In this document: positions 1 to 64,000 of the stretch, piece after piece
Layout of the letters: each line of letters starts with the position of its first letter
Position numbering within the stretch: the first letter of the stretch is position 1
Assembly: GCA_053919585.1 (NCBI GenBank)
Contig: CM132793.1
DNA from: Euprymna scolopes
Lineage: Eukaryota
DNA: 64,000 nt
Direction: 5' to 3' (one strand)
The notes under the pieces: generated by a model
The model's database searches: none
Seen by the model: the letters and a program-made list of their open reading frames with translations, nothing else
Told to the model about the DNA's origin: nothing
Translations under genes and position numbers: made by a program

Positions 1-59
1 CGGTGTTATAGTAAATTGTGAACCGCCAAGAGTTTTATCGAACATTTTTGGGACAGAGT

Positions 60-418
60 ACAACACTGCCATAGGATTCTAAATTTTCCTCTGCTCTTGT
101 TGCAATAGTTCCTTATTTTGATGCTGTTGATACGTCTAGTCGTGCGTCCCAGGCACTTGGTGTCCCACCAGTTATAGATGACTGTAGTATGTTTGGATTA
201 GATATCATTGCCCCTTGAATGACGTAGTTACGTTGTGTCATTACGTTTATTATCGGGTTTTCTTAGTAGACTATGATTATGCCAGATATGCGTGAATGTG
301 TCTCCTTGTTTTAGTTTAGTGTGTGGCATTTCTCTCCAGTCGTGGGAGTTGATCATGTTAGTGTCTGTCAATAGATTATGTGCATCCATTGCTGTTGTAT
401 TTGGTAACTTGTTTAGCA
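60..418 (-). pseudogene. Endogenous parvovirus-like capsid (VP) fragment, C-like lineage
   Basis: Translation HDWREMPHTKLKQGDTFTHIWHNHSLLRKP matches VP-C at 61215-62393; interrupted by the hAT element. Confidence 0.9.
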
Positions 419-1908
419 CAGCGGTTCTCAACCTTTTTTGACCCATGGACCCCTTTTCCCTTCTTTTTTTTTTCTTGGTGGACCCCCTTATAATTTTTGG
501 TCATAAAACAATATTCTATTTCTCAATATAATTTTTTGAGCTTTTAATAAACAAATAAATATTATATAATTAAACTTTATTTTTAAATGAAAACTAATTT
601 AATGCAAATAAAGTATTTTACAACAATTATAATAATGAAAACTTGATTAACGCTAACTGTTTTTTGTGTTTTTGTTTTTGTAAATTCACGTAATGGAATG
701 AATGAATGTGTGTGTGTGGTTTTGGTACTTAAGCAGGATACGGGCCGTGCTATTTTGTAGATAAGATTTTTAAGTTATACTCAATTTTTACGGTATGTTT
801 TGTTCCATTAAATTGTTAGGTGAATGTACATACATCTCAACCTTTTCCCGGCTATCGCCCCCAAAAGCTATTTTTGACTTAAGTTAATTCATAATCGCCT
901 CCAAGAATAAATAATAACAAATATTGTAATTATGACTAACCAACACTAGAAACATTTTGTACATGCAAATGGAAAACAAATTAATTAAAAAATAATTTTA
1001 TTGCAAATTTACAAGAAATGTAGAGAGTCTAACTAGTGTGAGCCCTGAGATTGGTGATGTTTCGCTAAAAATTCAATGTCAGGTTTAATATTACTCAAGC
1101 AGATACGAATATCTCCACGAGAAATAATGTCAAATCTGTTTCGTTCCTTCTGTAAAATGTGATTCACAGCGCTGAATCCAGTTTCGACAAGATATGATGT
1201 TGGGAAACACAAAAGGATTTTCGACATTTGTGACCACAAATTTGGATACAGTGATTTTACAGTGTTTGATTGCCGAAATGCACACAAAGTTTCTCTTTTG
1301 AACTTGATTTGCAATTCATCATTGCATTTTATCTCGATGATTTCCTCCTGGATATTTTTGTGTGCACTGAGAGGATCACAATCGAATGGGTCAATCATCC
1401 ATGGCTCAATAGTGAAGTCAAATAAATCGGAAAATTTGATTTCTAGATCATTTTTCATGGCTGACAGATGGTTACAATAAATAACAATGTCATTTTCACA
1501 TAAGTCGATTTCTGCTAGTTCGGGTATATTATCAAATTGCCTTCGTTTTAAATTAATTTGAAACATATTAAGTTTTTCAACAAAAGCTCTCATCACTCGT
1601 TTACAGTCTATCAGGGTTATCATTTTTCCTTGCAGCAGAGAGACTTCATTTAACTTACGGAAGATCCAACTAAGATAGTGTATATTTTTCTTTTGAGCTT
1701 GAATTTCGATAGCTAAGTCTGACTGTCCTTCTGTTTCCAAAGTTTCGCACTAATAGTTGAGCTACGCGTTTATAATTTCAAAAAATTTAAAAAATTTACT
1801 GGCAAAGATGTCAAAATTTTTCACAGATAAAATTGATTGAAAATCGCCCCCCAAAATTTGATTTTCGCCCACTAGGGGGCGCGATTCGCTCCTGGTTGAG
1901 AACCGCTG
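419..1908 (-). mobile_element. hAT (Charlie/Buster-like) DNA transposon, internally deleted
   Basis: TIRs CAGCGGTTCTCAACC (419) and GGTTGAGAACCGCTG (ends 1908); 8-bp TSD GTTTAGCA at 411-418 and 1909-1916; ORF 1033-1740 carries the hAT dimerisation tail FPTSYLVETGFS. Confidence 0.93.
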
Positions 1909-1921
1909 GTTTAGCAAATGT

Positions 1922-3456
1922 TGTAAGAATTTCTCTTACTCGTTTTTGCCTTTGGCAGAATGAAAGAGACACTCAGAAAAGCAACAAAGGCTCACCTTAA
2001 ATTCCAAGAATATTTTATTTACAAGAGAGGTAAAATGAGTCCATATTTGCAAAAGAGTGCAACTCTTTAGCTTCGGCCAAATGGCGGGTAGTTTATGCCT
2101 CGAAAGGTGTAGGTAGTTTTCTTCTGTGGAAAATGCTGGTTGAATTCGGCCGCTTGTAGAAGTGGTTGAGGGTTCTTCGAAATCCTTCCAGACTGGTCAA
2201 ATAAGAACAATGCACATTGCGATCGATGTTCCATAATAAAGGATGCCCTCCTGCGGGCAATGATGATGGATGCAATTAGTCCATAAAACATTTTTGCCTC
2301 AGGCTGGTATCCGCATTTAAGTGAGCGGAGATAACAAATAGAATAGAACCCTGCCTTAGTTCATTTGGCACGGAGCGAGACACCACGCGTCTGCTTTGCT
2401 CGACACGGAATGGAAATCTATTTGAAGAAACACAATATTCCCGCCAATTCCTGAATCCTCTGCAGCAACTGAAACAATGCAATTTCATTGGTCAAAATAA
2501 TCGCGTGATTGGAACAATCTAGCAGTTATCGCCCTTGCATTCTGAAATTTCTAACACACTGCCAAAGGAAGGAAGAGAAAGAAATGGATTACTCATTTCT
2601 TTCTTTTTTTTATCGGGAAATTAATGATTGTCGCCTATTTGGACAAGTTATTACAATGAAATTCTGTCTCAAAGGACTTAATATTAACACAATAATAGCA
2701 ATTAAATTCAATGTGTGTCTGTTGTCAATCTGAACTTATAACGATCTCTCCATGGCAAACAGAGAATTTATTAGTAATAAAAGGTATGACTCTACTGATG
2801 AGTCTATAAAAGGAATGTACAATTATTAACTTGGTGTTTGGTCCGCATAATCCGGACACACCCAATCTTCAACGGTAACTTGTTGGTCGACCCCGACACA
2901 ACCAAAATGGTACCACTCATTGCACGAGTCGCAACACACCATAGGTGTTGTTCCGTCGTTGGCGACTGAACATGTAGGGCAAAAGAAGGGGCCTCCTTCT
3001 TCCGCAAATTCAGCTAATGCAGGTTCAGGGTTATGTTTTATCTCTAAAGGATAAATATTTTTTAAGGAATGAATTTGGACACACCCGTCTTTCAGCACTG
3101 AGGCTGAACGAACCCTGTTGTCCTTTCCGACCAATAATTTTACTACCTTACCCAACCCCCAGAAGGGCCGGGACTTATTAGGAGCTTTGATAAGAACAAT
3201 TTCACCCTCTGATATTTTAGAGGTTTCATTTTCTGTAATGTGGGCGTCTACTTCTATAATTGAGAGCAAGTAGTCATTATGCCAACTACGTTTAAATTTA
3301 CTGACAAATTCATCCCTCATTTCAAGGGAATGTAAGAGCGAATTTCTATTTGGAGGTTCAGGACAAGGGTCCTCTGAACCGCTAACATTGATAAGCAGGC
3401 GGGGATGATATCCTGTCTGCAAAAAATGGTTGGGAGTCAACCCATCAAGGCCTCTA
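1922..3456 (-). mobile_element. BEL/Pao LTR retrotransposon 3' remnant (integrase tail, PHD finger, probable LTR)
   Basis: LTPNHFL...F...W...YL...W.LG.V..L..G.D..VR post-integrase motif followed by a PHD-type Cys/His pattern; TGTAAG at 1922 is a candidate LTR edge. Confidence 0.7.
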
Positions 3457-4028
3457 TCAGAAGCTGAAATAAATCTCGTCCAAGAAAGTGGGATTATCCT
3501 CACACATCCTGACGAACTGTTCGCAAAACTGAGACCTGCGATCAGGATCATCCTCAAGAAGTTCGTGAATTAGGCGCGGAATGTATGGTCTCATGTGGAG
3601 TTTCGTGAGTATTTTATGTAGAGAGGTTCGTTTGATACCAATTTCTGCACTAGCACGGCGAAGTGATTTCTTTTGGCTTCTGCCATATGCCTCAGCAACT
3701 GTAGCCAAATTTTGTTCAGTGCACACACTTGGCCGACCAGAACGCGGAGCATCAGCAACTGAGCCAGTATCATCTAATTTGTCTCGAAGTTTATAAATAG
3801 CCAAACGTGTTGGAGGATCTGTATTAAAATAATGATTCCAATCACGAATTACATCCTGTGCGTTTTCTGTTTTCCAATATCGCTTCAAAATAAATTTGCG
3901 CTCTTCCAAAGTTAGTTTGCGTGGCATGCTTGATTAAATAAACCTGTAAAAAAAATAAATATTAACTATTAATACAAATATAATACAATAAAACAATAAG
4001 ACTGTATAGTAACTTTACGGACACCCTG
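3457..4028 (-). mobile_element. Tc1/mariner-superfamily transposon 5' remnant
   Basis: HTH transposase N-terminus (TGSVADAPRSGRP, SLRRASAEIGI) at 3457-3927; TIR CAGGGTGTCC on the minus strand with flanking TA at 4029-4030. Confidence 0.85.
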
Positions 4029-4030
4029 TA

Positions 4031-4890
4031 TGATGCGGCATCTCTGCTAGTCCTACAGATGGCTTTTTGTCCTGAAATGTGTTGTTGGGTATGCTGGTTA
4101 GTCCCTCTAGGTTTCCGTATCCGATGTATTGGCCTTTGTCTATGTATATTTGGAACCAAGGTTGAGGATTTTGCACGAATACCTCCTTGTTGTTCTTTGT
4201 GAGGAATTCTCCGCGGATGACATTGTCTAATTCGAAGCCGATGCTTTTCACTCTGTATGCTGTTGCTGTATTCATCATTGCCTCCCATTGGTTTTGTCGT
4301 ACCCATGTAAGTATGGTACTATGTAGTCTTTTGATACCGGTTGTGCCCAAGCGTAATCTCCTACGTTTTCATACTTTCTGTTTGACTCGTATTTGTGGAA
4401 TGTTGCTTTGCAGTCGTTCATGTTGCTGGTTCTAATTAGGTTCCTGAATGTTCTTTTGACTATATGTTCTCTGGATGTTCCCCGTAGCTGTTTGCAGGTG
4501 CGGGCCGATGTGGATCTCCTCATATCCGTTAGATCCCGATTCCGAAGTCTCATCACTAGTACTTTCGTCCATTTGCGGCCTAGGTATACCGTCAGTGCTA
4601 TCAGCAGCACCCACGGCGGGATTATTTCTGAAATACTTGTCCAGTCCAAGTGCGTGTTTGGGTTTAATAGCGAGCGAGACCTCCGACGAATCCAGTACCC
4701 TCGCTATTTTTTATGAATTCTGCATCTGCCTCCTCCGTAGATTTATTTGGGTCGCCGTAGGCGATGTCGTGAAGTTTTGCTGCTAGGTCTAGTTTGTTTT
4801 TTGGTGTGTATTTAAATTTTTTAGGGTCTGTACCTGGTCCTAGAAATTCGTAACCCGGAACAGTGGATTCTACTTTCGTGCGTGTCATAA
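4031..4890 (-). pseudogene. Parvovirus-like VP 5' half with PLA2 domain, frameshifted
   Basis: TVPGYEFLGPG...LDLAAKLHDIAY; later frames match VP-A (TATAYRVKS, YIGYGNLEG). Confidence 0.92.
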
Positions 4891-4967
4891 TTGCACTCCA
4901 GACCTTAGACCCATCGGCGTTTCCCGAGGCCGTTCTTATGCGGGCTGTATCCTGGTAAACAATAAAT

Positions 4968-6326
4968 GGCACTTTTTACTGAGTGTGGACCCAAGCAAAA
5001 ATTTTTTTTTTGCTTAAGTACGCATGCGCGCAATCGTAAGTCTGCGGCCAAAAAAAAAGTCAAATACACATTGAACACATTGACCTCAACAGCGATTTTC
5101 TTTAGATGTACCAACAAGTTGAGATTTTTTTTTATCCAAAAAGTGAAAGAAATGTGAAATGAAATTTTTACAAGTCAAATTTTATTTTAAACAATATACC
5201 ACTGCGATATATGCAGCAACACATTGTCAAAAGCGTCTTTGCCACTTTTTCCTTAAACCTCCCTCCATAAAAATTCGTCCAAATGGGACTCCACTGTACT
5301 GGAGTGCACCCCCATCATTGTTTTGAATTTCGTTTTTGCGTTCTTCCAAAAACATTCCACCTTGTTGGTGTGCACGCCTGATACTGGATCGACGAAGTGT
5401 TGCGAATGGTTCACTTGTTTGTGGATGTACCTGGGGTGGAGATTTATCTGGTCAATTGGAGTATATGCTCTCCAACTGTCAGAATGTATGGTAGTTCCTG
5501 GTTTTATGTATTTTTTTATCAGTGGTATCAAGGTGTCGGAGGAGCGATCACTGACAAAAACCAAAAATCCGATTTTATCCTCTGTATCCCACCCACCGAA
5601 AACCCACCTTTGCTCTGGTACTCTACCGCGGTTATATTTCCGTTTACAGATCAAAGACTCATCAATTTGTACCACGTGGCCAGGTCCACCTATTTGGTAT
5701 GGGTTCATCACCATATGATGGCTTGTGGCGTCACGTAAATACTGGTACCATGAACAAATGGTCTTCCCGCTTACCTCGCACATGTCAGAGGCGACAACAC
5801 CAGTTATCTGTCTAGACCAGACATATGCAATTCGGATGAATTCTTGCAATGTTATTTTGGAGTCTTGCAAAAATGAACCCTTTTTTATCGATGCCTTCTG
5901 GTTCTTATGGGCTTTGCATCGGAAAACTTTAGTGTCGCGATTTTTGATAAGAGACATCTGCTGTTGACAAACACTGCATACCATTTTTTCTGCAAGGATT
6001 TTCCTCTCTTTGAGGAAAGTATCAGCGGAGTCAAAATCTTTCGTCCACTCAAAGAGTTGTGTGAGCATTTTTTGAAATGTGAAATAAACTTTTTAAAAGT
6101 TCCGAGAGATAAAATCGCTGTTGAGGTCAATGTGTTCAATGTGTATTTGACTTTTTTTTTGGCCGCAGACTTATTTGGCGAGTTCCGAGAGATAAAATCG
6201 CTGTTGAGGTCAATGTGTTCAATGTGTATTTGACTTTTTTTTTTGGCCGCAGACTTACGATTGCGCGCATGCGTACTTAAGCAAAAAAAAAAATTTTGCT
6301 TGGGTTCACACTCAGTAAAAAGTGCC
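4968..6326 (-). mobile_element. Merlin (ISXO2/IS1016-like) DNA transposon, near complete
   Basis: ~130-bp TIRs starting GGCACTTTTTACTGAG; 8-bp TSD CAATAAAT at 4960-4967 and 6327-6334; 271-aa ORF 5253-6068 with VQIDES, IHSDSW, VNHS, HTNKVE. Confidence 0.95.
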
Positions 6327-6787: not shown

Positions 6788-7620
6788 TCATGTTGGACGC
6801 AGTGTCTGTCTTGTGCTCGACTGTCCCACATGCAGAGGTGACAATGGAAACTTGGTGAAACCTTTCTGTTGACCAAGAAGGAAGTTTACCATTGTCAAGT
6901 CTACACAAATGATCCAGTTGTGCTCACGATATATTAAGAAGTTCATGACCATTCTGATGTCATCATAGTCTTCCCGCAGATGAACTGAATGACCGACAGG
7001 CACTGCCCCGTAAACATTGCCATTATACAAAAGAACACACTTGAGACTGCGCTTAGAACTGTCTAAAAAGAGCCGCCATTCAGTTGGATCATAGTGAGGA
7101 ACACCCAGTTCTTTGAGAAAACCTGGGCTATCATGGCAGTAAACAAACTGTCTGTCTTCTGAAAAGAAGGTCACAAAAAGCTGGTCACGCTTTCTGTAAT
7201 ATGATACTTTAACAGTGTGAACAAGATTTTTGCCTTGTAATCTTGATGCCAAAAGCTCAGCTGCTTTCTTTGAAAGACCTAAATCCCGAACTAAGTCATT
7301 CAGTTCAGTCTGGTGAAGAGGCTTGGGGACGGGGGGGGAGATTCAGTTTCTGAAGAACATTCGTCGGGTTGTTCCCACTCAGTTTCTGGTAATTCATTGT
7401 CACAACTGTCTTCCTCGTCCATGTCATGTCCAATGTCTTTATCGTTTAATGAAGGCAAACCTTTGAAAACTGGAACAGGAACTTCAGAGTGCGGAGCAGG
7501 CCGAATAACTGAGGAAATGTTCAGATATACGATTTTATGTCTGTTTTTCTTGGTCACACCTGCTGTGTTTACCATGCAGAAGTAGCAATCAGTTACATGG
7601 TTGGTGGGTTCTCGCCAAAT
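6788..7620 (-). mobile_element. DNA transposase remnant, Chapaev3-like
   Basis: WREPTNHVTDCYFC, LFLDSSKRSLKCVLL and WIICVDL..VNFLLGQQ.GFTK motifs; broken by stops. Confidence 0.65.
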
Positions 7621-8454
7621 GCAATTTATACCGTGTTGATAAGATTTGTATGAAATTAAATGTACTCTTTAAAATGTCGCAATAAATTAGTGTAAGTAAT
7701 TCAACCAGTTTTGTATGAAGAAATATTAACTTACCTAATGGTCAAAATTCTTTTAATTCCCTCTTCTCTTACTTCAAGTTCATCTGATTTTACCATAGAA
7801 AATAAAATATTTTCTGGTAGTAATGCAAAAGCATTATACTGAATGTTTTTAAGTGTAATTTTTTTTAAATTTCAGTTGGTTGCTTCTGTATTCTCTGAAT
7901 CATATTATAAATGTACATTTGTAGGGATGTGACAAAAATTTTCAAAAATAATTCATCACATTTTCTAATACCACATTAAAGTGCATTTAAAAAGCTTTCG
8001 AATGATGTATAGATTATTGTTCTATGACAAATAATAAGGAAATAATGGAATTTTTAATTACGGAAATATGAGGAGATTTTCTGTCTCTAATTACACAGTT
8101 AAGTCAATGGAGATCTGTGACCTAGTTCTATATTCGTCCAGTTTAAACTATCATAACTTTCTTAATTTTTGGCAGATCTTAAAAAGTAAGGTACCACTAG
8201 AAAGCTTTTGAAATTCTTAATAAGAACAGAAAACACAAACAAAGATTCAAAGTAATTGACTGATTTTTATTATAATACGAATATTGATTTGGCATTGGTA
8301 CTTGCTACAATTACTCGGAAATCGTCACCCTGACTTGGCTCTTAAATATTGGTAATGGTTACACTGACAAAATTGACTATTATAGTAAGATTGTCTCCAT
8401 CACAATACATAGAATACTTTTAAAATGTGAATAAGCATTTAAAATTTTGCCCAT

Positions 8455-11158
8455 TTATGACATAGTAAGGTCTTCACATAGCATATCAGCTGCCAGAGCA
8501 TACTTGTTCAAATCAAAATCAATTGCATCATCTGAACTCTCATTCTCAGCCCAGTAACTAACAACATATGTTCCACCAGCCTTTTTCTTCAACTTGTCAA
8601 TTTTTCCATTGTACCAAGTCTTATCACCTGTCTCTTCATCATACCAAATATGACAAACTAACTTCCCCACAACTTTCCCTGACAATATATCCTCAACGTT
8701 ACTCAATATATTATCATCTAATTCACAAAACTCTTTCCTAAGAACAAACTCTTCACTTTTTAACCTCATTTCTAGCTTATTTCTGTCATAAGTCTTTTCT
8801 GCATCTTTTTAGATATCCGCCATCAAATTTCTTCTTTGATTTCTACGCTCCTTTTCCTTCCTACCTTGCGTTGATTTCTTGCCAAACCTACCGATAACAT
8901 TATCAATCTTTCTCTTTTTACACGTTCAAGTGAGTCAAGATATGAGCCAATCTTATTTTTCTTAGCCCTGATCTTTGAGGATATAAAACTCGGTGTAGCA
9001 TTAGGGGCTCGATCTTTTGCTGCAAAAAACATTCCCATTACTTCCTCTGCGTCAATATTATGACACCTTGCTGATTCAGTTTCCTTCTTCAGTTCTTCAG
9101 TTACAGATATATTGAAATAGCGTTTGTACTGTCTTTCCAAAACTACAACAATTTGAGAGAGGCACTGTGTCATCATAGAAGAGAATAGAAAGGCATCATC
9201 ATCTTAAGTAACATCAGTATCTAAATCCTCATTGAAAAAGTTTACAGTCATTTCCAGTAACTCCAGTGGTCTATCAACTAAATTTTTTATACGCTCTACT
9301 ACACTTTTAACAACCGATATACCCTCTACATGTCCAACAGTTTGAGATGTAGAGGAAGTATAAAATTTTGACATCCACAGCCCTGACAAAAATTTTCCTA
9401 TCAAGCCTAAAACCTGCAATTCTAAGACGCCTACTGGAGAGGTGAAGTCTTTGAGGATGGCAGACTGTAATCCACCACATGAAACTGTGCCTGTAGAGAA
9501 AAATTCTGAGAATGTTTCATAATGAACTACTAATTTTTGAGAAATGTCAAATAATATATGTAATCTGTTTCCTCTATATCTTGGCAGAAACCCCTTTGGT
9601 AAGCCAGACTTCTCTAAAAATGAGATAAATCCCTTTGGATCTCCCTTACTGTCCTTATATCTGAATTTATTGATGGCCAATACAATGTTGCCAGCTACAC
9701 AATCATTTCCTAACAAATGGCCCTTATCAGTTTCAACAGCTTTAAGTGCAGAACGTGTCCCACTGGCAATACTTTCCAATGGATGTAAATGACAATTCAG
9801 TTTATTTAAAGATACATTCCATGTCTCCTCTAGACGGGAAATTGTAGCGAAGTTGACAACCACCCTATCAGTGAGAGTATTACTGATCCTTGAAACCACA
9901 CTCTTCCTGGTTGTCTCAAAATCACAATGAAAAAAACTGACAATAAGCATTAACCATACGATTGATAGAATATAAAACATGGTTTTCATAGTCTTCAGCT
10001 GTACCGCCAGGCAGATGATCAATAGATATGACAATTGGAAGGTGATGTTATATGCATCTCATTGACATGGACACCTTCCTGAGTAGTGGCATCAAAGCAT
10101 AATGTAAGGTTTTCATTGCTTAAAATATACTCAGCAACCTGAAAGTCTGAAATGGCCCCCAACTCCCTTACCATCATCTCTACAGTCGATCTACGTGGTA
10201 TATTTTCTATGCTATATCAACACCTACCTAGGAAGCTTTTTATCAAGTTAGGAACATTTATAGTTGGAACATTGTTCAAAATGCAGTCGTACACAAACAT
10301 TCTTATGTCCAGTGAAAAAGTCTTCCCTTCCTTTTGAATAAATTTTGTTTGATTATCCACCTGTTCCTCTAGAATGAACTTGTCATTCTCTAACTCCGAT
10401 ATTATAACATCTTTTTCTTTCAGTTTATTTTCAAGGACAGTCACAACATCCTTGTCAGCATTAGTGACACTGTCCACCTGACTCTCTCGCTTTCCACTGT
10501 TTAACTGACTGTATTTGTTCTTTTGCTTCCTGAGTTCATGCTCAAGTCGTTGGAAGGCTTCTATATTTGCATTTTTTAAAAATTTTTTGAGATCCTTCCT
10601 CAACAAAGTGATAATCGCCCTCTGTTTAGAGATCACTGTCTTTTTCCTCATTAAGTCCTGGTTCGAGTATTTGACCTTCATCCCATGTGTTGACTCGATA
10701 TTAGCTTTCAGTCCTTGCATAGATGTCTTGTATTTTTGTTGCATAACCTGCTTTGATTTAGAAACAAAATCAAGTCTCTTCTTCATTAATTTGCACCTTG
10801 GTGTTAACGGCTTTCTTGATGTTCTCTCGGAGGAGGTTGTTGGTGTAGCAGGAATTGGTACAGCTAATGGAGTTGAAGAAGTGGACGGTGTTGGGCTGCA
10901 TTCATTCCCTTGGCTAGTCTTTGTTTCAATATCAACAGGAGGATTGTCTGACTGGACTTTATAGAAAGTAAACACCTCATCACACAAGTGCCTGAATTTC
11001 TTCAAGTCATTCTCTCTTGATAAGTTGGTGTATTTTCTTATTGTACAGTCCAACAATTTTTTTATTTGCCAACGAAGAAAACATTTTAAAAGGGTTTCGA
11101 TATTTTCTCCGGAGAGCAGAAAAAAATCCGAACCTTTCAGTTCAGAAATATTTTCCAA
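8455..11158 (-). mobile_element. Large degraded DDE transposase with CxxH motif (hAT/P/MULE/Kolobok supergroup, family unresolved)
   Basis: Four collinear ORF pieces; FDATT, LTDR, NCHLH and NIDAEEVMG candidate catalytic motifs. Confidence 0.55.
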
Positions 11159-11399
11159 TCTGATAAAATTTGTTAATTTAGCTTAAAACGAAAACTGTTT
11201 TTCTTTTGTTTACATCACGTGACACAAAACGGCAAATGAGAAAGCTCCAAAAAGTCGTCTGCTGAATTCAAATAAACCGCTCAAATTCACAAATATTGGA
11301 AAAAATCTTAAATTCGTTTTAAAATAAATTTTACAATTTTTTCTGTTTTATTTTTTATTTAAAAATAAAATTCTCAAAGCATTCATTAGGAACATTCTG

Positions 11400-11725
11400 T
11401 TTTCCATGGCCTCTCGTTAGCTACGTGTCGACGTTGCTTGTCAACAGGCATGGAGTTCGCTTCAGTATCCTCTCACTCTGGTGTTTTACGTTGACGTACG
11501 TATCCATGCCTTCCAGGATACACTTTGCCTCCTCGACGTTCTGCGGTGTGAATCACATTTCCTCTGAAGATGCGGCTTTTATCCACGCAGCTGTCGAATG
11601 TGAAATTGTCACTTGCCTGGCAGCGCATTCGCCCTGCGTTCATCAGGCTGTTGCGGATGCTTCTGAGGATATATGATTTGCCTGAGTTTGATGGACCCGT
11701 TATGTGTAGGGCGTTTTTTTTTTGT
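11400..11725 (-). pseudogene. Parvovirus-like NS1 helicase fragment
   Basis: ITGPSNSGKSYILRSIRN Walker A region nearly identical to NS1-A. Confidence 0.9.
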
Positions 11726-11769
11726 ATGTTTTCAGCCCCTACAAATCCTGGATCAGTGATCATCTGGCC

Positions 11770-12383
11770 GATTGCAGTCTGTGTTTTTTGTGTGGACTTA
11801 GGTAGTCCATTTCATCGGATGTGTATTTTTCCGCTGCGGATGGTTCATGGCCGTTGTCAGTAATGTATCTGATGGCTGCGTGGTTTTCTATATGTTCTTA
11901 ACATACCGTCAGCCACATGAGTGGGTTCAGTTCTACAACTCCCCATTGTCACAGGGCCTCCATCGGTTGACAAGTTTTGTTATTGAATACTCGATTCTGC
12001 ATGGCATCTCTTTCTGCCATTATGTGGCGCCAAGGATTGTCCTTCAAAGTGCTCAGACATAGTGTGTGCTTAAGAATGCGTTCCTCTTGGTGTTTAACGT
12101 TCACATACGTCTCTGCACCTTCCAGTATGCATTTCGTTTCCTCGATATTTTGTGGTGTGAACCACATTTCTTCTGTAAATAATAGAGATTTATCTACGCA
12201 GCTTCCGAACGTAAAGTTATTAGACGCTTAGCACCTCATACGTCCGCAGTTTATGAGGCCATTCTTTATGCAGCGCAGCACTTGGCTCTTTCCACTGTTT
12301 TTGGCCCTGTGATGTGTAGTCTATTTACCTTCAGCCGAATCTGGTGGCATACCTCAAACTTTGTTCGACTTGTAGGGGATCTA
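11770..12383 (-). pseudogene. Parvovirus-like NS1 fragment, split by Tc1 (continues at about 13641-13680)
   Basis: MWFTPQNIEETKCILEG; the IYEAWCNHHNI/DP reading resumes across the Tc1. Confidence 0.85.
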
Positions 12384-16952: not shown

Positions 16953-16974
16953 CGTAGCAATAAAATATTAAAGC

Positions 16975-43288: not shown

Positions 43289-43304
43289 TGTGGTTATATA
43301 TGTT

Positions 43305-43360: not shown

Positions 43361-43384
43361 ATTAGTGAAAATATTATATTAGTC

Positions 43385-53126: not shown

Positions 53127-53210
53127 AGTTACATCAGTGTCAGTGCGGTTTAGAAAATATTTACAAAAGTCTATGTGATCATTGATAAGTGTCATTGATA
53201 GAATACTTTA

Positions 53211-55193
53211 TCAATCGGAGTCACTGAGCACTTCTTCACATTCTAAAAATAGCTGTGACGTCGGCCCTCGTCCGTTGATTTGTCGTTGGTATATTGCTAA
53301 TGTGTAGTTTATTATGTTTTTTTTTTTGTTTTTTTTTGGTGTGACGAAGTCGTCCTCCTCCGGTTCTTCTGTTTCTGAGTCGCTGAGCACTATTACTCCG
53401 GAGATTGGCGAGTCCTCTATTACTGTGTCTTGAGACATGGTGGGTGCTGAGGGGCTGGGTTGGTTTGTTGCTGTAGGACATCTGTGTGCCTTGCAACCGT
53501 GGGTTTTACAGTACTGCGTCGGCTGGTTTTCGTCAATTTCACATGCCTCAGTCATCCAGTCCTCGACGTCGGAATCGTCTGAGATACGCAGGTTTTGTAC
53601 CTCCTCTCCTCCCATGAGTTCTTTGAACAGTTGTCTTCGTGCCTTCATGTAACCCGCCTGTTTGTCTGGTGACAGGCCCTCTACTGCTTGGACAGTGAAG
53701 TTGGTCGATGCTGCTGGTTCCTCGATGTCTTCTTCCTCCTGGAATTGGTACGTCTGGTTCGTGTAGTCCATCACGTACTGTCTCCAGACGGTCAGCCACA
53801 TTGTCGGATTGAGTTCTCGGACTCCCCATCCCTTTAGGGCAGGCATGGGCCTCTTCGTCTCGTAGAGGAACATTCGGTTGTGCATTGCTGTTCTTTCCTG
53901 CGGGACGTGTCTCCAGGGGTCGTCGTTACTTGTAGACAGGCATGGTGTCCTCTCTAAGTATCGTTCCGCCTGGTGCTTCACGTTTACCGCTGTTGTGGTA
54001 CCTTCCAGGATGCACTTTCCCTCCTCTACATTTTGTGGTGTGAACCACATTTCGTCCGTGTAGATCAGTGTCTTGTCCACACAGGAGCCGAACGTGAAGT
54101 TGTCCGAAGCCTGACACCGCATTCGACCGCAGTTCATGAGCCCGTTTCTGATTGACCGTAACACGTAAGACTTGCCTGAGTTACTTGGTCCTGTTATGTG
54201 GAACCCGTTCTTTTTGGCCCATATCATGTGACATACTTCGAATAAGTTTCTTCCGAATTCTACCGGGTCAAAGTTGTGGTGTTGGGCCCAAACGTTGTAT
54301 ATGTCCAATGACTTTTGCACAGACCAATACCGGTTCCCGTCCATGCTGAAGAGGTCCTTCTTTTGCCGGATCTGTTCGAATATGGGTGTGACCTTTGTTT
54401 GGATTTGTAGGTCGCTTGCCGCTGCCTGCATGATCGGTTGAATGTTTTGGGTATTGGTAAATATGTGTTCCCATGTGTCACAGACCTTTGCATTTGTGGA
54501 TTGTTTACAGTAGAGCATGACTTTTGCCATGTCAGTACTGTTACATTTTCTCATTATATCGAGAATGAATTTATATTTTTGCCCTCTCAGGGTAGATTTT
54601 CCAGTGAGTCCTGTGTCTACCGCGGGTTCGTCCTGTTTCTTTAAGGGCTTGTCGCATATTTTTCTGTAGGTCGCTAGTTGACCGGGAGTTTCTAGGTGCC
54701 CTGCTGCTACTACTGTACGTTTTGACGGGTCCTGTGTTAGGTAACTGCAGAGCCCGTACGGGTTGTAAATTTTCTGGCATGAGATTTGGTAGGGGTTTAT
54801 CTGTCACTCGCCCTGGAGTTTTTTCATTTGCACGTAACTGTGCTCGCATGTCGGGTGGTTGTGGTGCCATGTTATCATGTGGAAGTGGTCCACGTCTGCG
54901 CAATGTTTCAAACTGCTTGGCCCTGCTACGTGGTATACTATTATGTATGGGCGCTGGTCTAGAATTCTGGCCAAGTACCCGTGGGTAGCGTTCGATGGCT
55001 GTAACGTTAGCGCCTCTTGGTAAGGTTTGGTCTCTGTCGTCCCCGGCTTAAGGCTGAACTCCTTTTCGGTTTCCCAGCGGTAGATCCATGTGTACGGTCG
55101 GATTTGTTTGCCGTTTACAGTTTCTCCGTTGACTAAGGTATTGAAATGTTGTTGTTCTTCTCTTTGGTTGCTGGCGCTGGTCGTGGCTTCCAT
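53211..55193 (-). pseudogene. NS1: NS1-B duplicate with the same frameshift
   Basis: Offset 13985 from the first copy. Confidence 0.9.
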
Positions 55194-55425
55194 CCTGAAT
55201 GTCTGGAGCGTGTGCCTGATCGGTGGTTTATGTGCGTCTTTTATAGCAAGTATCTGCGTCGTAAGAATTAGAATCTGTTGCCGGTTTTGTAATTATCTCT
55301 GGTAGTAATTGAATTATGCTGACGTTGATGAATTTCGAAAATAGCTAATTGATTTTAGCTGACGCCTCGGAATTTAAAAAAGTATATATTTTGCTTACCG
55401 AGCGTTTAGTGTCTGTAGCTCCACC

Positions 55426-57273
55426 CTATTTGTTTACGAAACGCCCATAAGGCATGCCGAATATTTGACCGTTGTGGTCCCATATGTGTGTGCCGTGATT
55501 ATGAAGCATTCCTTTTGCTGATTGGCCGTGGAAATGTCTATTGGGCGGTACAATGGTGTGGTATTCGTAACTGAAGTCCGCCGATGTTGCTGATAGTGCT
55601 TGTTTGTGGGTGGTGACTGGGACCTTCTGCGGGTGGATAAGTGCGTCACAGACTATTTCAATTTCTAGCATGTAAGTTAATTCGAAGTTGAAATATAAAA
55701 TACCGGCGGTGCTGTTCGGGCGCAGTATAGGCGGAACATGTATTAGTACCATGTCTGGTGAGTCCTCGTTTGTGTAGAGCACCTTGTTAATCACTGTTCT
55801 GTCAGACATTGTTGTGCAACCGCTTGTTTGTATGTAAGTTGTCGCTCCGATGTCCACTTTTCCACTGTCCTTCTTCCCGGCGTCGCTCGTGTTTGTTTTT
55901 CTTCCTCTTTGGTGATCGAAGTTTAAGTCCGACACCTCTGTTTGTACTAGGTCCTCCTGCACTTCCTTACGTTGACGTTTTCGTGCACCCTGGCGGACGT
56001 TGTCCTCAGCTTTTCTCAGTATGGTACCGTAGGCCGGCGCGGTCGCTACCGATAAACCGCAGTCCCAGGCCGTTTTGACTCCCGAATTTAACAGGTTAGT
56101 GATTAGTACCGGGTTTGATATCATACCTGCCTGTATTGTGTAGTTGCCCTGCATGGTAGTGTTGGTTAGTGGTCGTCTTAGTAAACTGTGGTTTCGCCAT
56201 ACGTGTGTGAATGAGTCACCCTGTCGTAAGTTTTTTACGTTTGGCATTTCTCGCCAGTCGTGCAAGTCGATCATTTTCACCTGTGTTTTGTTTACTGAGT
56301 CCGAGAAGTTTCCAGTGTTTGTGATCGCATTGATTAGTTCGATCGGTGCCATGTAATTGTATGTGTAGGTTGGTAACTCTGCGTCTGCCCCTACCATGGG
56401 TTGGATTTCTGAGAAACCTTTGTTTGGGATTTTAGATATTCCTTCCAAGTTTCCGTAACCGATATATGAACCGTTGTCGATGTAGATGTCGAAGTAGGGT
56501 TCTGGGTTTGGTACGAAGACTTCCTCGTTGTTTTTTGTCAGCCATTCACCGCATGTTATTTTCGATATTTTAAATCCTTGGCTGACGATCCTGTACGCTG
56601 TCGCGTTTGACATTATCGCTTCCCATTTCGGCGGAGTTACCCAGGTAGTTAGGAAGTAGGGTACTATGTAGTCTTTCGATACCGGCTGTGACCATGAAAA
56701 CCGGGCTGCTCCGTGTATGCCTTCCTTTGGGTCAGTGTCGTAGATCTGGAATATAGCTGCGCAATCATTCATGTTTGTCGTTTTGACCTGGTTTTTGAAG
56801 CTCCTCTGTAAAACTACTCGTCTTACGTTGTTGTTAGTAATGGTTGGTAGCTCTCCTCCCTCCTCATTTCCTCCCCACGCTCCGCTGCCGTTGTCGTTCG
56901 CGACAGTGCTCGCCTCCGAATCGACTTCCATACCTGCTTCGCAGCTAGCAGTGTAAGTAGGATCAAGTTTAATTCGTTTAGGTGGGGGATCGAAGTAGTC
57001 GTCCAGTCCCAGGTAATGCTTTGCTCTGAGTGCCCCTCGCGATAAAGCTCCCAACAGACCTGTTCCAACAGAGTCCTTGTAGAATTGGTCATCTGCTTCT
57101 TTGGTCTTGCCTTTTCCGTAGTTGAAATCGTGTCTTTTTGCTGCCCAGTCCAAACGATTTAGGGGAGGCAGGTATTTTTTGTAATCGAGGTCAGTACCAG
57201 GCCCTAGGAACCTGTGGTACGGTACCGTCCACTCCGACCTCCTCGCTTTCTTCTGGTGTCTTACCGGTGGCAT
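55426..57273 (-). CDS. VP1: Capsid protein B duplicate, open 615 aa
   Basis: Translation the same as 41441-43288. Confidence 0.92.
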   Translation of the reverse strand: MPPVRHQKKARRSEWTVPYHRFLGPGTDLDYKKYLPPLNRLDWAAKRHDFNYGKGKTKEADDQFYKDSVGTGLLGALSRGALRAKHYLGLDDYFDPPPKRIKLDPTYTASCEAGMEVDSEASTVANDNGSGAWGGNEEGGELPTITNNNVRRVVLQRSFKNQVKTTNMNDCAAIFQIYDTDPKEGIHGAARFSWSQPVSKDYIVPYFLTTWVTPPKWEAIMSNATAYRIVSQGFKISKITCGEWLTKNNEEVFVPNPEPYFDIYIDNGSYIGYGNLEGISKIPNKGFSEIQPMVGADAELPTYTYNYMAPIELINAITNTGNFSDSVNKTQVKMIDLHDWREMPNVKNLRQGDSFTHVWRNHSLLRRPLTNTTMQGNYTIQAGMISNPVLITNLLNSGVKTAWDCGLSVATAPAYGTILRKAEDNVRQGARKRQRKEVQEDLVQTEVSDLNFDHQRGRKTNTSDAGKKDSGKVDIGATTYIQTSGCTTMSDRTVINKVLYTNEDSPDMVLIHVPPILRPNSTAGILYFNFELTYMLEIEIVCDALIHPQKVPVTTHKQALSATSADFSYEYHTIVPPNRHFHGQSAKGMLHNHGTHIWDHNGQIFGMPYGRFVNK

Positions 57274-57555
57274 TGTGGTTATATATGTTGTAATTGCGTC
57301 ATTTCTATTTATAGATTACGATTATTGCGTCATTATGACGTCATCATTAGTGAAAATATTATATTAGTCGCAGCAATGAAGTAGTGGCACTACCCAAATT
57401 ATTTAGCAGTCACAGGTCTGACGTGCAAACCTCTCGTAATTTCATCAGTCACTGATGAATACGATACAATAATCCGTGACTGATGAAATTACGAGAGGTT
57501 TGCACGTCAGACCTGTGACTGCTAAATAATTTGGGTAGTGCCACTACTTCATTGC

Positions 57556-59068
57556 TGCCCGGTCTGAGGAAGTCGTACCCTGGTACAGTGAATTCTAACT
57601 TGGTCCGACGTCGCTTTCGCGGTGGAGGCATACTGCGTTGGTTTCATGCTGTATGTGTTTATATATTACTAAGTAGGTCAACATCTGTGACTATTGCGTC
57701 ATGTCTATTTATAGATGTGATAATATTTTATTTATACCTAATATCTGGTTTCTAGTAATGGCACTATTACTTTTACATTGATCGATCTAATGTATGGAGT
57801 GCAACGACTACACGACACTACCAGTGAAAAAGAAAATACAATACCAGACTGGTAGTGTTGTGTAGTCGTTGCACTCCATACATTAGATCGAACAATGTAA
57901 AAGTAAAAGTGCCATTACTAGAAACATTAGATCGATCCATGTAAAAGTAATAGTGCCACATTAGGGGATTTAATTCCAGTGTTCCCCATTCTTGTAGGTC
58001 GTCCATTGCTGTTCTGGTTGTGAAGAGGAACATTCGGTTTATCATTGCCTGTTTTTCGTTTGCTACGTGATGCCACGGCTCATCGTTGCTCGTGGACAGG
58101 CATGGAGTTCGTTTTAGTATTCGCTCACTCTGGTGCTTGACATTTACGTAGGTGTCAGTGCCCTCAAGGATACACTTTGCCTCCTCTACGTTCTGTGGCG
58201 TAAACCACAGCTCCTCCATAAATATCAAGCTCTTGTCGACGCAGCTTCCGAAGGTGAAGTTGTCGCTTGCCTGACAGCGCATGCGACCTGCGTTCATTAA
58301 ACCGTTTCTTATGCTTCGTAGTATATATGATTTCCCCGAGTTAGACGGCCCCGTGATGTGTAGCGCGTTTTTTTTTTTCTGACGTATTTTGTGACATACC
58401 TCGAACGTACTAGTAGCGAACTCGTCGGCATCAATGTGGTGATAAGTCAGCCATTCGTCGTATATGTCCAGGGATTTCTGGACGGGCCAGTATTGATGCG
58501 TCATGGCTGAGAATAGCTCGTGTTTTTCACGTATCTGTTCATGGATTGGTGTCACGTTTAATGGTGGGGTGTGTGGCGTAGTTCATATTTTTAAAAAAAT
58601 CTCTTATAAGGTTTAGAATAAAATAGAATACGTGAGAATTGGGCTGATAGCTGGCCGTATTGGTGCCTACATTACTTCCTCCTTACCTTATATGATTGAA
58701 TCCTTTTTGATTGCGTGTGTGCCTAAAACTTTGATTCATCCCAGGTCAGGTGTCATGGCCGCCGAAAAAGTTTCTTTCCTCTCAGGTCAGGTCTTCTTCT
58801 GAAAATAACTATTACATGCTTGTACCATGCTTATACATGCAAATATCATGCCATACATGCGATCGAAATTCCAATATATATAATACATACTCCAATATAA
58901 TATTTAATATAGTTTATTATAGTAATGAATCGTACAATAGAAAAGATAGTTTTTAATTCGTTAGTATACAATGTGTGTGTGTTAGTAGTAATAGTAGGTC
59001 GCACCAGACCTTAGAGTGTAGAAAGTTTTTGTCCGCCATCTTGCCAGACCTTAGGTACTTAAATTAAC
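57556..59068. repeat. Module M4
   Basis: M2-type copy; terminal module B here runs on into the NS1-C 3' region. Confidence 0.92.
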
Positions 59069-59197: not shown

Positions 59198-61044
59198 TTA
59201 GCAGTGTTTTTTTTTTTTTTTTTTTGGTTGTGGTGATAACCTTTCGGCTATGTACAGTATTTGTTTGTCGCTGTCGTGGTCGTCTTCCTCGTCGCTTGAT
59301 AATTGTATGATGTCGGGTAATTCTGTATTTGTCGGGGAATTTCGTGGTGTCATCATGTCGGAGATTTCGTTGTCGTTTTGAAAGTTTAATGCGCAGTGGA
59401 CCATTTTTTTTCCATGCGTCTTGCAGTATTGCGTCGGGAATCTTTCGTCGAGTTCACAGTACCCGTACAGTGCGTCAAATTCTTCTGATAGGTTTCTTTT
59501 CACGCTGTTTGTTTTTCTTTTTTTTTTTTTTTGGCGATTCCTGGTCGTTATTGCTCGCGTTGTATCGTTTGGATGTTCTAGGTTGTTGTATATTGTCCAT
59601 TTCTATAATGGTGTATTTATTGTTTGTGTATTTGTTGATCTGTTCCCGCCAAATGGTAAGCCACATTAGTGGGTTTAGTTCGATAACCCCCCATGTTTTT
59701 AGCATGTCCATTTTACGTTTTGTCGTGTATGTGAATAATCTGTTCTGCATAGTCTTTTTTTCGGACGCGACGTGTCTCCACGGGTCGTCATTCGAGGTGC
59801 TTATGCACGGAGTCCTTTTTAGTATGCGTTCTTGTTGGTGTTTCACATTTACGTATGTGTCTGCACCTTCAAGAATGCATTTGGCCTCCTCTATGTTCTG
59901 CGGCGTAAACCACATTTCCTCTGTGAAAATGAGGCTTTTGTCGACACAGCTTCCGAATGTAAAATTATCGGAAGCCTGGCATCTCATTCTACCGCAGTTC
60001 ATGAGACCGTTTTTTATACTTCTGAGCATGTAAGATTTACTCGAGTTACTGGGTCCTGTGATATGGAACCCGTTGATTTTTGCTCGGATCTTATGGCATA
60101 CCTCGAATAGTTCTGTAGCAAATTTCTCTGGGTCGAAGGAATGATGGTTACACCATTCTTCATAAATGTCTAGCGATTTTTGAATTGACCAATATCGTGT
60201 TGTGTCATCCTGAAATAGATTTTTTTTTTGTCGTATCTGTTCCCATATAGGTGTGATTCTCGTGTGTATTTGAATGTCCGATGCTGCTGCGTGTATAATG
60301 TTTTGGAGATTCGGTGTGTTCTTATGTATATTTCTCCATGTATTTTTGTGGTGCTCTGGTGCTTGATTCTGACAGTATAGCATAATGTCTCCTATATCTG
60401 TCGAATTACACTTCTTCATCATTTTTAGGATGAAGTCGTATTTTTTGCCTCTGAGTGTGTCTCCTTTGGTGTTTAGGTCGGTGTCTTCGTCACTGATGTT
60501 CAGCAATGGTCTTTGTAGTAAGTCGCTCCAGGAAGCTTTTCTGTCTCTCCGTTGACAGGTTCCCTGCGCTTATCACCTGCCGTTTTTCTGGTTCTGCCTC
60601 AAAGTACTGGCATAGTCCGTGAGGAGAATACACTTTTGAGCATGTCATGTTGTAGGGTCTTAATGGTCTTTCGTTCAGCGCTTTTTTCAGTGCTCCGAAG
60701 CCGTACTCACATGTCGGATGGTCGTGATGCCAGCTGATCATGTGGAAGTGGTCCACGTCACTGCAATTTTTCATTTTTGATGGGCTTGCCTTGTGGTATA
60801 TACATATGTACGGTCTTTGTTCCCCAACGCTTTTAAGATATTTATGTGTATTTTTCTTTAAGTTCATGGTTAGTGTGTGTGGTAATGTGTGTAGTTCTTT
60901 TTCGTTCGACGTTATTTTGAATTCGTTTTCCGTCTCCCACCTGTAGATCCAAGTGTATGGTGTTTGTTTTTTTCCGTCCTTTGTATCCGCGAGAATGTAT
61001 TCATTCCAGTTTAATTTTTCCTCAAGTTTTGTTTGTCCGGCCAT
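59198..61044 (-). pseudogene. NS1: NS1 lineage C, full length with two frameshifts
   Basis: DHFHMISW; Walker A altered to GPSNSSKS; three ORF pieces. Confidence 0.9.
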
Positions 61045-61214
61045 AGCGTTCTTGTGGCTGTCTGTTCGTAGTCTGGTGTGCCGTTCCCGTTGTCGTGTAT
61101 TATATAATGTTTGGTGACGTCATCATATTACGCTTAATCTGCAATTTTTTAAGTCACGTGATTTTAACAAGTTCCAACGTGTTCAAGAATGTGCTGACGC
61201 TATTGTAATTTGAT

Positions 61215-62425
61215 CTACTTGTTTACGAATTTTCCGTAATGGAATCCCAATGTCTTTCCTTGGTGTCCTGATAAGTGTGTTCCGTGGTTATGTATCATGC
61301 CCTTTGCTGATTGGCTGTGGAGATGTCGATTGGGCGGGACTATGCAGTTTAGTTCGTAATTGAAACCGGCGTCCGTAGCCATCTCCGCACATGTGTGATC
61401 GTTCATTGGTAATTTTTGTGGGTGTGCAAATGATTCGTACCAGCATTCTATTTCTAACATGTACGTTGTTTCGAAAACAAAGTACAAGATACCCGTTTGT
61501 GCTGATGGTCGGAGTATTGGTGGTACATTTATCAAAATCATTTCCGGGGCGTCCTCGTTTGTATATAGTACTTTGTTAATTAACGTTCTGTTGGCTACGG
61601 TAAACGCCCCTGATGTTTGGTTATACCCTGAAATATTTTTATCGTCTTTTTCTTTTTTGCCTGTGCTGTTTGATTTTCTTCCCCTTTGGTGATCGAATGC
61701 AAGGTCGGCTACTTCTGTCATAGTCAGGTCCTCTTGTACTTCTGTTCTTTGTCGTTTTCTTGGTTTATAAGATTCTAAGTTTTCCTCTGCTTTTGTTGCA
61801 ATTGTCCCGTATTTTGGTGCTGTGGATATGTCTAGTCCGGCGTCCCAGGCGGTTGGATTTCCTCCACTTATGGATGATTGCAGTATGCTTGCACTGGAAA
61901 TCATTGCTCCTTGTATGACGTAGTTACCTTGTGTCATGATGTTAGTTATTGGTTTTCTAAGCAGACTGTGATTATGCCATATATGTGTGAAAGTGTCTCC
62001 CTGTCTTACTTTTGTGTGCGGCATCTCTCTCCAGTCGTGAAAGTTTATCATTTTTGTGTCTGTTGCTAGTGTATGTGCGTCTATTGGGGTTGTGTTTGGT
62101 AACTTGTTTAATAAATGTATCGGTGCTGCGTAGTTGTATTTATATTTTGGTAGTTCGGCAGTTGTTCCTATCATCGGTTGGATTTCGGTGAATTCATTGT
62201 TTGGTACTGTTGATATCCCTTCCAGGTTTCCGTAACCGATGTAGTTTCCTCTATCTATGAATATATCAAAGTAAGGTTGTGGATTTGGTACGAATATTTC
62301 CTCGTTATTCTTTGTTAGCCATTCCCCGCATATGATGTTGTCGAGTGTTACTCCGATGCTTTTCACTCTGTACGATGTAGCCGTGTTGAGCATCGCTTCC
62401 CATTTATTGTTTGTTACCCATGTAC
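61215..62425 (-). pseudogene. VP lineage C, 5' truncated
   Basis: 392-aa open segment ending GKFVNK; homology stops at about 62425. Confidence 0.9.
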
Positions 62426-63983
62426 TTAAAAAGTATTATTTGTCCATGTTTTAAAATTTTTATTCTCCCATCTTGGTCTGCATACATAGTTGTAAATTTT
62501 TTCAATCATAGCTTGCATGTATGAATCATTTTGTGGATCAAAATCAATTTCATTAATTGCGTTTAATGCAGAATTAAACTCTGATTCATTTTTTGCTTCT
62601 AACAGGACATATCTTGCACAAAATATATTTTTTATTGATTGTTTGTATGCATTTGGCATCATTTACAAATCTGACCAAGTTTTCCTTTAAATGTCTAGCA
62701 CATAAATACCGTGCTGCATTCCCAAATACTGCATCCAATGCTTTTACGATGGCTTTCTCTTGATCTGATCCAATCTGAATTTGATCAGAAAGATTTAAAC
62801 AAATATTTTTTTTTTTTTGCTATCTTAGATGCTATATGGCTGAAAAAAATGCGTGGTAGACTTCATAAGTTGACTTCTTATGTAAGAGTATTGGACCAAT
62901 GAATACTGGATTATTCTTGGTTGTTTTTTTTAGATATTTTTGTATTTTTAAAGTTCACTAATGTCAGAAAATAAGGACCTAAGTTGAATGTTCTATCAAT
63001 CCCAATTATAGACTTGTCATCCATACAAGAGCAAAGATCCTTAATTTGGTCGTTTGTGTAAAGTATTAGAGCTGGAATATCAGCATCTATTTTAACAACC
63101 ATCCTAACGAATCCATCATCAATTAAGGTTAAACATTCTTGTAGCTGATCAGATAAGTCTGTACTTGTTGGTTGAGAGTTTTTTTTATCTTTTCTCTATA
63201 TTTCAGATTTGTAATGACTTTGTAGTCAGCAATCTCAGTTGGCATGTTGAGGTATATCTTTTTAGTTGGCAAATCTATGTTTTCTTTGATGTTGTCTAGA
63301 GTTTCAGGATTGGTTCGTATTTTTTTTCTGCTCAAAGGTTGAATACCATTATATTGGTAGAACATAAGCTCATCCATATGTGGATTTTGTGTATCAGAAA
63401 TAACTGTAATCCGTCTTTTAAAGGTTTTATCAAATTTGTGAAGAACTTCATGTCTAATTATTGTTATTTCTGCATCGTCAGGCTGTGGTTCCATCAAGAT
63501 GAACTTTCATTTAATATTGTTTTTCTTAAAAAGAATTTGTTGTTTCTTTTATATATTACTTGGAAACTTTTCCGAATATAATAGTCAACATGGTATATCT
63601 TTTTATGAAGATCCCATTCACCACAATTGTCATAAAATGATCTTTTTATACCTATATTTTTATTTTTGTCTATTAAATCTTAACATAAATTGGCAATTAT
63701 TTTTAAGGCCACTTGGAAAATTATTTAAAATGTCTGTGTACTTCAAAAATTACTGATACAGCTTTTTACCTGAACTTATATAAGTCATGAATTTAGAAAC
63801 TCCTTTCATATCATATGCAAATTTATTGATTGGCTGATCAAAATGTTTCATCTCAATTTGATTCGAAATTTCACATGAAACTGGAGTATCATTTAGAATT
63901 TCAGCTTCATTGGTAATGCTTCCTGAATCACTACTGCTTGAATCAATGCTAATAGGGACATTTCCTTGTGAAGACTCTTCCAA
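62426..63983 (-). mobile_element. Degraded Mutator/MULE-like transposase
   Basis: IGIDRTFNLGPYFLT and WTNN motifs in collinear broken ORFs. Confidence 0.6.
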
Positions 63984-64000
63984 TGAAACAAAATGGTTTG

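Follow-up and report, generated by a model that had tools for sequence, protein, structure and literature searches.

The window analysed here, a 64,000-nucleotide stretch of contig CM132793.1 taken in its whole length, contains a dense array of parvovirus-like and transposon fragments which share one coding strand, the minus strand. Stop-to-stop open reading frames (ORFs) of at least 200 aa number 23 on the minus strand and one on the plus strand, and those of at least 300 aa number 15 and none, respectively. Dinucleotide shuffles give an expectation of about 0.1 ORFs per strand at 200 aa or more; the strand asymmetry is genuine and lies well beyond chance. At 100 aa the plus strand shows a mild excess over the shuffled sequences (37 ORFs against 16), as expected where A-rich coding sequence lies opposite. 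The window is free of N, and its plus strand is T-rich nearly throughout. The longest plus-strand ORFs, located at 59311-60030 (240 codons) and 37370-37894 (175 codons), lie opposite NS1 genes and match no family. Both most likely arise because the A-rich sense strand leaves few stop codons opposite.

When ORFs were scanned singly against Pfam, a match was obtained for 30 of 60 on the minus strand. On the plus strand, none of 45 ORFs of at least 90 aa and none of 45 ORFs of 70-89 aa gave a match (E <=0.01). In addition, the window was searched by tblastn with three query sets, namely its own ORFs, a set of 159 NS1-like proteins and a set of 82 Merlin transposases. These searches located 16 NS1 regions, 8 VP (capsid) regions and 5-6 Merlin regions on the minus strand, and no match on the plus strand for any of the three query sets. 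A first-pass annotation, made from the letters of this stretch, had placed all remnants on the minus strand and had found no convincing coding remnant on the plus strand. Both statements agree with these searches, in which 0 of 90 plus-strand ORFs matched Pfam.

The families with Pfam support, all on the minus strand, are Parvo_NS1 at many places, VP bearing a phospholipase A2 (PLA2) domain in four ORFs, and the Viral_Rep domain of CRESS-DNA viruses. Among transposons, Merlin (DDE_Tnp_IS1595, three sites) and Tc1/mariner (DDE_3 and HTH_Tnp_Tc3_2) are supported, together with retroelement pieces of BEL/Pao type (DUF5641 and PHD) and of Gypsy type (reverse transcriptase (RT), RNase H and gag). 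The helix-turn-helix domain DUF4817 is also matched. Most families on the first-pass list are thus recovered (NS1/VP, CRESS Rep, Tc1/mariner, Merlin, BEL and Gypsy), but the matches to hAT (Dimer_Tnp_hAT, E 0.067, short of the curated cut-off) and to MULE (a single short ORF, E 0.0044) are weak. Pfam scans of the window's ORFs revealed no host-gene domain on either strand, and neither tRNA genes nor Rfam families were found in the window. Parvovirus-like coding sequence amounts to 30,185 bp, or 47% of the window, in line with the earlier estimate that about half of it derives from single-stranded DNA (ssDNA) viruses. Its share is 22% in the 1-33 kb part and 73% in the 33-64 kb part. No array boundary is visible at either window end.

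About 40 pieces can be distinguished in the array. Because the 33-62 kb part holds near-identical segmental duplicates, these pieces represent about 24 separate acquisition events of known kind. The figure of more than 30 independent remnants in the first-pass annotation was therefore overstated. The acquisitions comprise about 12 parvovirus-like lineages (A, A'', A2, B, B', C, D, E, P3, P4 and two lone VP fragments), one CRESS Rep, five Merlin elements, two Tc1 elements, two long terminal repeat (LTR) retrotransposons, one DUF4817 element and one hAT-like element. One orientation is shared by about 24 of 24 acquisitions (two-sided binomial p ~1e-7), and the 11 transposon remnants taken alone also have a single orientation (two-sided p ~1e-3). 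The transposons are true insertions, as indicated by a Merlin element with a perfect 8-bp target-site duplication (TSD) and by a TA-flanked Tc1 element inside an NS1 remnant. Transposons are observed nested inside viral remnants. Moreover, the three Merlin elements bounded by terminal inverted repeats (TIRs) share no nucleotide similarity with each other.

The paralogous NS1 and VP pieces differ mostly at synonymous sites, with pS (synonymous differences) of 0.3-0.9 and pN/pS (nonsynonymous over synonymous) of 0.05-0.2. The NS1 genes at 23 kb and 46 kb are separated by a dS of 0.33 with dN/dS 0.08, and the two VP_B-type genes by a dS of 0.9 with dN/dS 0.08. The short helicase fragments differ from NS1_A with pS ~0.8 and pN ~0.04-0.05, whereas near-identical copies show relaxed ratios of 0.3-0.5. 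This synonymous-dominated divergence indicates that purifying selection acted on the lineages as they diverged, prior to integration, and that they entered separately and are not decayed local copies. Most simply, the viral lineages diverged as viruses and integrated one by one, which is consistent with the several NS1/VP lineages noted at first pass. Repeated multiplication of a single unit was considered as the cause of the co-orientation and was ruled out, since the paralogues differ mainly at synonymous sites.

Recent segmental duplication has nevertheless enlarged the 33-62 kb part. In self-comparison, segments 35545-45083 and 49525-59069 form a direct pair of 9.5 kb with about six mismatches, and VP_A shows 0 differences from its duplicate over 1887 nt. 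A nominal 10.5-kb pair at 98.3% identity is composed of this near-identical 9.5-kb part and 0.9 kb of diverged homologue. In addition, a 3.7-kb block is present three times, and all large self-matches are direct repeats. The 9.5-kb duplicate reflects either segmental duplication in the very recent past or an effect of the assembly.

In units A, B and C, as well as in the degenerate unit E, VP is located immediately upstream of NS1 and on its strand, the two genes being about 100-150 nt apart. Three near-perfect palindromes flank the VP-NS1 pairs. H1 (189 nt, 43385-43573, z -29) lies upstream of VP_A. H2 (about 180 nt, 49629-49806, z -23) lies upstream of VP_B-type genes and occurs in four copies, the other three at 35649-35826, 43763-43940 and 57748-57925. 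H3 is a perfect palindrome of 86 nt (22447-22532, z -18), situated about 0.5 kb downstream of A-type NS1. Unit A measures about 4.7 kb from H2 to H3, and several units are near-complete. The three palindromes are candidate viral terminal hairpins which were kept after integration. A 186-codon minus-strand ORF (47345-47902), read in a third frame, reaches from the last part of VP_B into the first part of NS1_A and has a 79% aa-identical homologue at 24732-25093; it may represent an accessory gene or have arisen by chance.

The NS1 proteins match Parvo_NS1 with 60-70 bits (Pfam cut-off 20) and the adeno-associated virus (AAV) Rep helicase in the PDB with E 1e-12, and four VP ORFs match Phospholip_A2_4 with 30-40 bits (cut-off 23.9). 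The first 240 residues of NS1 gave no Pfam match, and no motif check was made there for the N-terminal HUH nickase domain of Parvoviridae. PDB sequence searches with VP detected no capsid relative beyond the PLA2 domain. The units share with Parvoviridae an NS1 with a superfamily 3 (SF3) helicase, a VP with an N-terminal PLA2-like domain, and a unit length within 4-6 kb with terminal palindromes. They differ in gene order. As far as is known, classified monosense parvoviruses carry NS before VP, and the order known from Parvoviridae is either NS then VP or ambisense, whereas VP precedes NS1 in three lineages of the window.

The same order is found in metagenomic relatives. An exhaustive HMMER search identified 1329 relatives; the closest (L004) is 95% identical in aa but only 83-85% identical in nt. 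The partial Logan contig L001 has a VP C-terminus about 90 nt before NS1. Seven related contigs of 3.8-4.2 kb (L005-L007 and L009-L012) all contain an ORF of 430-600 aa upstream of NS1 (7/7); their NS1 proteins show 24-33% identity, and a PLA2-type N-terminus is present in three of the seven upstream ORFs. A circular or permuted assembly was ruled out as the origin of the VP-first order, as the contigs have no end overlap; L009 carries palindromes in both end regions. Among 20 relatives checked, one bears the name of a virus, Turdus hortulorum parvoviridae sp. (QTE03882.1), whose NS1 is at most about 33% identical. One sample with a related contig (ERR1301596) is a faecal virome (PMC5597861). 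Our literature searches found no description of a VP-before-NS gene order in parvoviruses, and PMC12297876 was rejected as a precedent because the virus described there is ambisense. By these comparisons, the units belong to a barely named parvovirus-like clade with VP upstream of NS1. This clade is a more unexpected by-product of the analysis than the locus itself.

The two parts of the window differ in how well their content is preserved. Within 1-33 kb the content is mostly truncated and inactive, and each remnant carries 1-2 frame changes and up to five stops and covers its gene only partly; one Merlin element (4968-6326) looks intact. The 33-62 kb part contains four unbroken viral genes, namely NS1_A, VP_B, VP_A and the VP_A duplicate. 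In addition, the NS1_A copy at 37 kb is uninterrupted internally although truncated at its 5' end, and NS1_B and its duplicate have one in-frame stop apiece. The NS1 at 23 kb has one frame change, as well as one stop near an end.

The best fit to this array, held with moderate confidence, is a flamenco-type uni-strand cluster producing PIWI-interacting RNAs (piRNAs). The locus would act as a gene-free trap, in which unrelated viral and mobile DNAs persist only if they code on the minus strand. The most likely reason would be transcription of the locus into one long plus-strand precursor, which would then be processed into small RNAs antisense to the VP/NS1 mRNAs and to the transposase mRNAs. 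From the arrangement of the locus we infer transcription of the plus strand and processing into piRNAs, as well as any filter on orientation and any antiviral effect. The anatomy agrees with such a cluster: nested fragments of transposons and endogenous viral elements (EVEs) are densely packed without host genes and lie overwhelmingly in one orientation. The co-orientation of unrelated elements, their nesting, the lack of a host gene and the repeated capture therefore sustain this part of the first-pass proposal. Its observation is confirmed with a corrected event count, and its cluster interpretation is plausible and agrees with what is known of such systems. It is further possible, though doubtful, that a mollusc-like genome maintains here a heritable one-strand archive. 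Repeated capture of whole, hairpin-bearing, VP-first genomes from an as yet undescribed parvovirus-like clade would then supply antisense piRNAs, in an adaptive-immunity-like memory of DNA viruses whose newest entries are intact.

Several observations weigh against a cluster of this type. A plus strand poor in poly(A) signals was expected, but the hexamer AATAAA is instead enriched on that strand, with 64 copies compared with 27.5 +/- 4.9 expected from dinucleotide shuffles (78 compared with 67 expected on the minus strand), and there is no sign of selection for read-through. Intact ORFs of 620-660 codons and terminal palindromes are atypical of the decayed content of classical clusters, and sense expression is possible. 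Moreover, the viral orientations may not be independent if new genomes recombine with resident copies, and much of the co-orientation in 33-62 kb stems from tandem duplication.

Recombination and duplication are the core of one alternative without any small-RNA role, which we consider unlikely. At an integration hot spot, the homology of a resident genome, or its origin or hairpin, would guide later related genomes into register, and unequal crossing-over would multiply the units with their orientation preserved. All large self-matches are direct, including the near-identical segments 35545-45083 and 49525-59069 and the three 3.7-kb blocks; palindromes lie at unit junctions, and viral sequence makes up 73% of 33-64 kb, in keeping with such a process. 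However, 11 unrelated transposon remnants and the CRESS Rep, which insert without parvoviral homology, are all on the minus strand too (p ~1e-3), and distant NS1 lineages (27-50% aa identity) are too diverged for homologous recombination, yet co-oriented. The co-orientation of unrelated elements, as well as the array boundary seen at neither window end, would also be compatible with a very long intron or long noncoding RNA of a plus-strand host unit. Sense insertions would be purged there for their splice and poly(A) signals, leaving an antisense bias without piRNAs. We regard this as quite unlikely, since the window contains no exon-like plus-strand ORF with a domain match, and since the antisense bias of introns is moderate, unlike the 24 of 24 found here. 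The plus-strand enrichment of AATAAA also counts against it, and argues equally against selection for an uninterrupted plus-strand mRNA precursor.

The remaining two accounts concern the viral copies. The intact VP/NS1 pairs of 33-62 kb might constitute a selected, vertically inherited gene family or resident element, expressed in sense, with low dN/dS arising from selection within the genome and fragments arising by birth and death. Four unbroken genes, a single stop in NS1_B, the dN/dS of 0.08 between NS1 at 23 kb and 46 kb, and the retained hairpins would suit a family of this kind. Nevertheless it is very unlikely, as the near-identical copies show relaxed ratios of 0.3-0.5 and many copies are cut at arbitrary points. 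Synonymous-dominated divergence is found in other data sets too (L004, 95% aa and 83-85% nt identity), and relatives occur in virus-particle-enriched faecal viromes, which fits circulating viruses; a selected family is also silent on the co-oriented transposons. We give equally little weight to the near-identical duplicates being an assembly artefact, with haplotypes or collapsed repeats laid in tandem and a true array that is shorter. The identity of VP_A and its copy (0 differences over 1887 nt) and the count of about 6 mismatches in 9.5 kb would suit such an artefact, but the copies differ in indels and in junction partners. An artefact would only shorten the array; it would leave the 12 distinct lineages and the shared orientation within 1-33 kb untouched. 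Among these four alternatives, only the hot spot and the intron or long noncoding RNA explain any co-orientation, and viruses and transposons together are covered only by a transcription-linked filter.

A flamenco-type cluster also has close counterparts among known systems. Cluster 38 of Aedes aegypti, a flamenco-like locus of 143 kb with co-oriented hybrids of transposable elements and EVEs, gives one antisense transcript and phased piRNAs (PMC7161354). The window resembles this cluster and Drosophila flamenco in being gene-free and repeat-rich, with transposon and viral fragments on one coding strand. In the known flamenco-type cases, antisense transcription yields one precursor and phased primary piRNAs, both of which would be predicted for the window. 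The EVEs of Aedes are decayed and derive mostly from RNA viruses fused to LTR retrotransposons, whereas 47% of the window is parvovirus-like DNA. Unlike the Aedes cluster, the window also contains whole genomes with hairpins and intact ORFs, its transposons are mostly DNA transposons, and an arthropod host is improbable. The intact Merlin transposase has its nearest named relatives in Octopus and sea slugs, which points weakly to a molluscan host. Nothing indicates an arthropod, and the arthropod framing of the first-pass annotation is therefore unsupported.

In arthropod piRNA clusters, Parvoviridae rank with the leading EVE families (bioRxiv 10.1101/396382), and parvovirus-like EVEs of a starfish and a sea anemone give antisense, 5'U, 26-30 nt piRNA-like RNAs (PMC6085071). 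Both reports weaken the earlier suggestion that dominance by ssDNA viruses is the unusual aspect of the locus. Numerous ssDNA-virus EVEs are common to these studies and to the window. The studies provide small RNAs with little or no locus structure, whereas the window provides locus structure, with many lineages on one strand, at the level of sequence. If small RNAs confirm the cluster, the window would be among the clearest structural examples of a DNA-virus-dominated piRNA-type locus outside insects. It would bring about 12 related virus lineages together at a single locus as a dated series, aiding the study of archive growth and of long-term virus-host history. Irrespective of piRNAs, the locus and its metagenomic relatives reveal a parvovirus-like clade with an unusual gene order, for which one named representative was found.

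Table 1. Annotated features of the 64-kb window in order of position.
Feature	Position	Strand	Content or evidence
VP (capsid) fragment	71..434	-	82% nt identity to unit C VP; at least 1 frame change, 1 stop
Probable hAT transposase C-terminal remnant (weak)	1036..1749	-	Dimer_Tnp_hAT E 0.067, below curated cut-off
DUF5641 + PHD finger ORF, BEL/Pao-type pol C-terminus	2829..3569	-	Pfam
DUF4817 helix-turn-helix ORF, transposase N-terminal type	3460..3933	-	Pfam
Broken VP fragment, PLA2-like domain	4027..4975	-	78% nt identity to VP_B; at least 1 frame change, 2 stops
Complete small Merlin	4968..6326	-	133-bp TIRs 97.7% identical, perfect 8-bp TSD, 279-codon transposase ORF
Two ORFs, origin unassigned	6791..7668	-	No Pfam match even at E 10
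Four-ORF block (117-321 codons), origin unassigned	8458..11182	-	No Pfam match even at E 10
NS1 helicase remnant, lineage P3, nested Tc1 inside	11376..13772	-	At least 2 frame changes, 5 stops, 1 insertion
Tc1/mariner element	12382..13642	-	32-bp TIRs, TA flanks; transposase in two ORF pieces
Tc1/mariner DDE_3 fragment	14404..14835	-	Pfam
Broken NS1 remnant, lineage P4	14940..15809	-	tblastn and pN/pS comparison
CRESS-DNA virus Rep remnant	16030..16967	-	Viral_Rep 69 bits; RNA_helicase borderline; two overlapping ORF pieces
Merlin transposase fragment	17912..18154	-	tblastn E 3e-10
Degenerate parvovirus-like unit E	18041..20882	-	VP fragment, then NS1 pieces
NS1 helicase ORF, distant lineage D	21195..22247	-	~27% aa identity to NS1_A
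Unit A''	22447..25095	-	Perfect 86-nt palindrome H3, NS1 (92.6% nt identity to NS1_A; dN/dS 0.08), last VP codons
Ty3/Gypsy-type gag/RT/RNase H fragment	25022..26506	-	Pfam
Merlin element 2	28256..29649	-	140-bp TIRs, 94% identical
Merlin element 3	29737..32266	-	~205-bp TIRs, 91% identical
Merlin transposase fragment	32406..32540	-	tblastn E 4e-8
Unit B'	33127..35826	-	Palindrome H2, VP differing from VP_B at synonymous sites (dN/dS 0.08), NS1 helicase piece
NS1 helicase fragment A2, copy 1	35767..36428	-	tblastn
5'-truncated NS1_A copy with half-copy of H3	36949..39147	-	Self-comparison
Unit B	39253..43573	-	189-nt palindrome H1, intact VP_A (629 codons, PLA2), then NS1_B (one in-frame stop)
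NS1 fragment A2, copy 2, with palindrome H2	43763..44571	-	tblastn
Unit A, ~4.7 kb	45084..49806	-	Palindrome H2, intact VP_B (621 codons, PLA2), intact NS1_A (659 codons), half of H3
NS1 fragment A2, copy 3	49807..50410	-	tblastn
NS1_A copy, 5'-truncated, at least 2 frame changes, half-copy of H3	50927..53133	-	Self-comparison
Unit B near-identical duplicate	53214..57558	-	VP 100% identical at nt level
NS1 fragment A2, copy 4, with palindrome H2	57748..58582	-	tblastn
Unit C	59300..62819	-	5'-truncated VP_C, then NS1_C (at least 2 frame changes); no hairpin found
Short ORFs at window edge, origin unassigned	62914..63998	-	ORF listing

Among the features outside the parvovirus-like units, the CRESS Rep remnant scores 69 bits with PF02407 (cut-off 26) and 20.7 bits with PF00910, the latter being borderline to its cut-off of 21.5. 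The 321-codon ORF of the block at 8458-11182 had no homologue in a word search, and its single-sequence AlphaFold model has a pLDDT of 38, too low to be of use. The ORFs of this block and those at 6791-7668 are possibly genes of an undescribed transposon or virus. The Merlin assignment is based on an IS1595-type DDE transposase, TIRs and an 8-bp TSD. The intact Merlin transposase at 4968-6326 has its nearest named relatives in Octopus sinensis and O. bimaculoides (54-68% identity), followed by sea-slug proteins, and the intact state of this element hints at recent activity.

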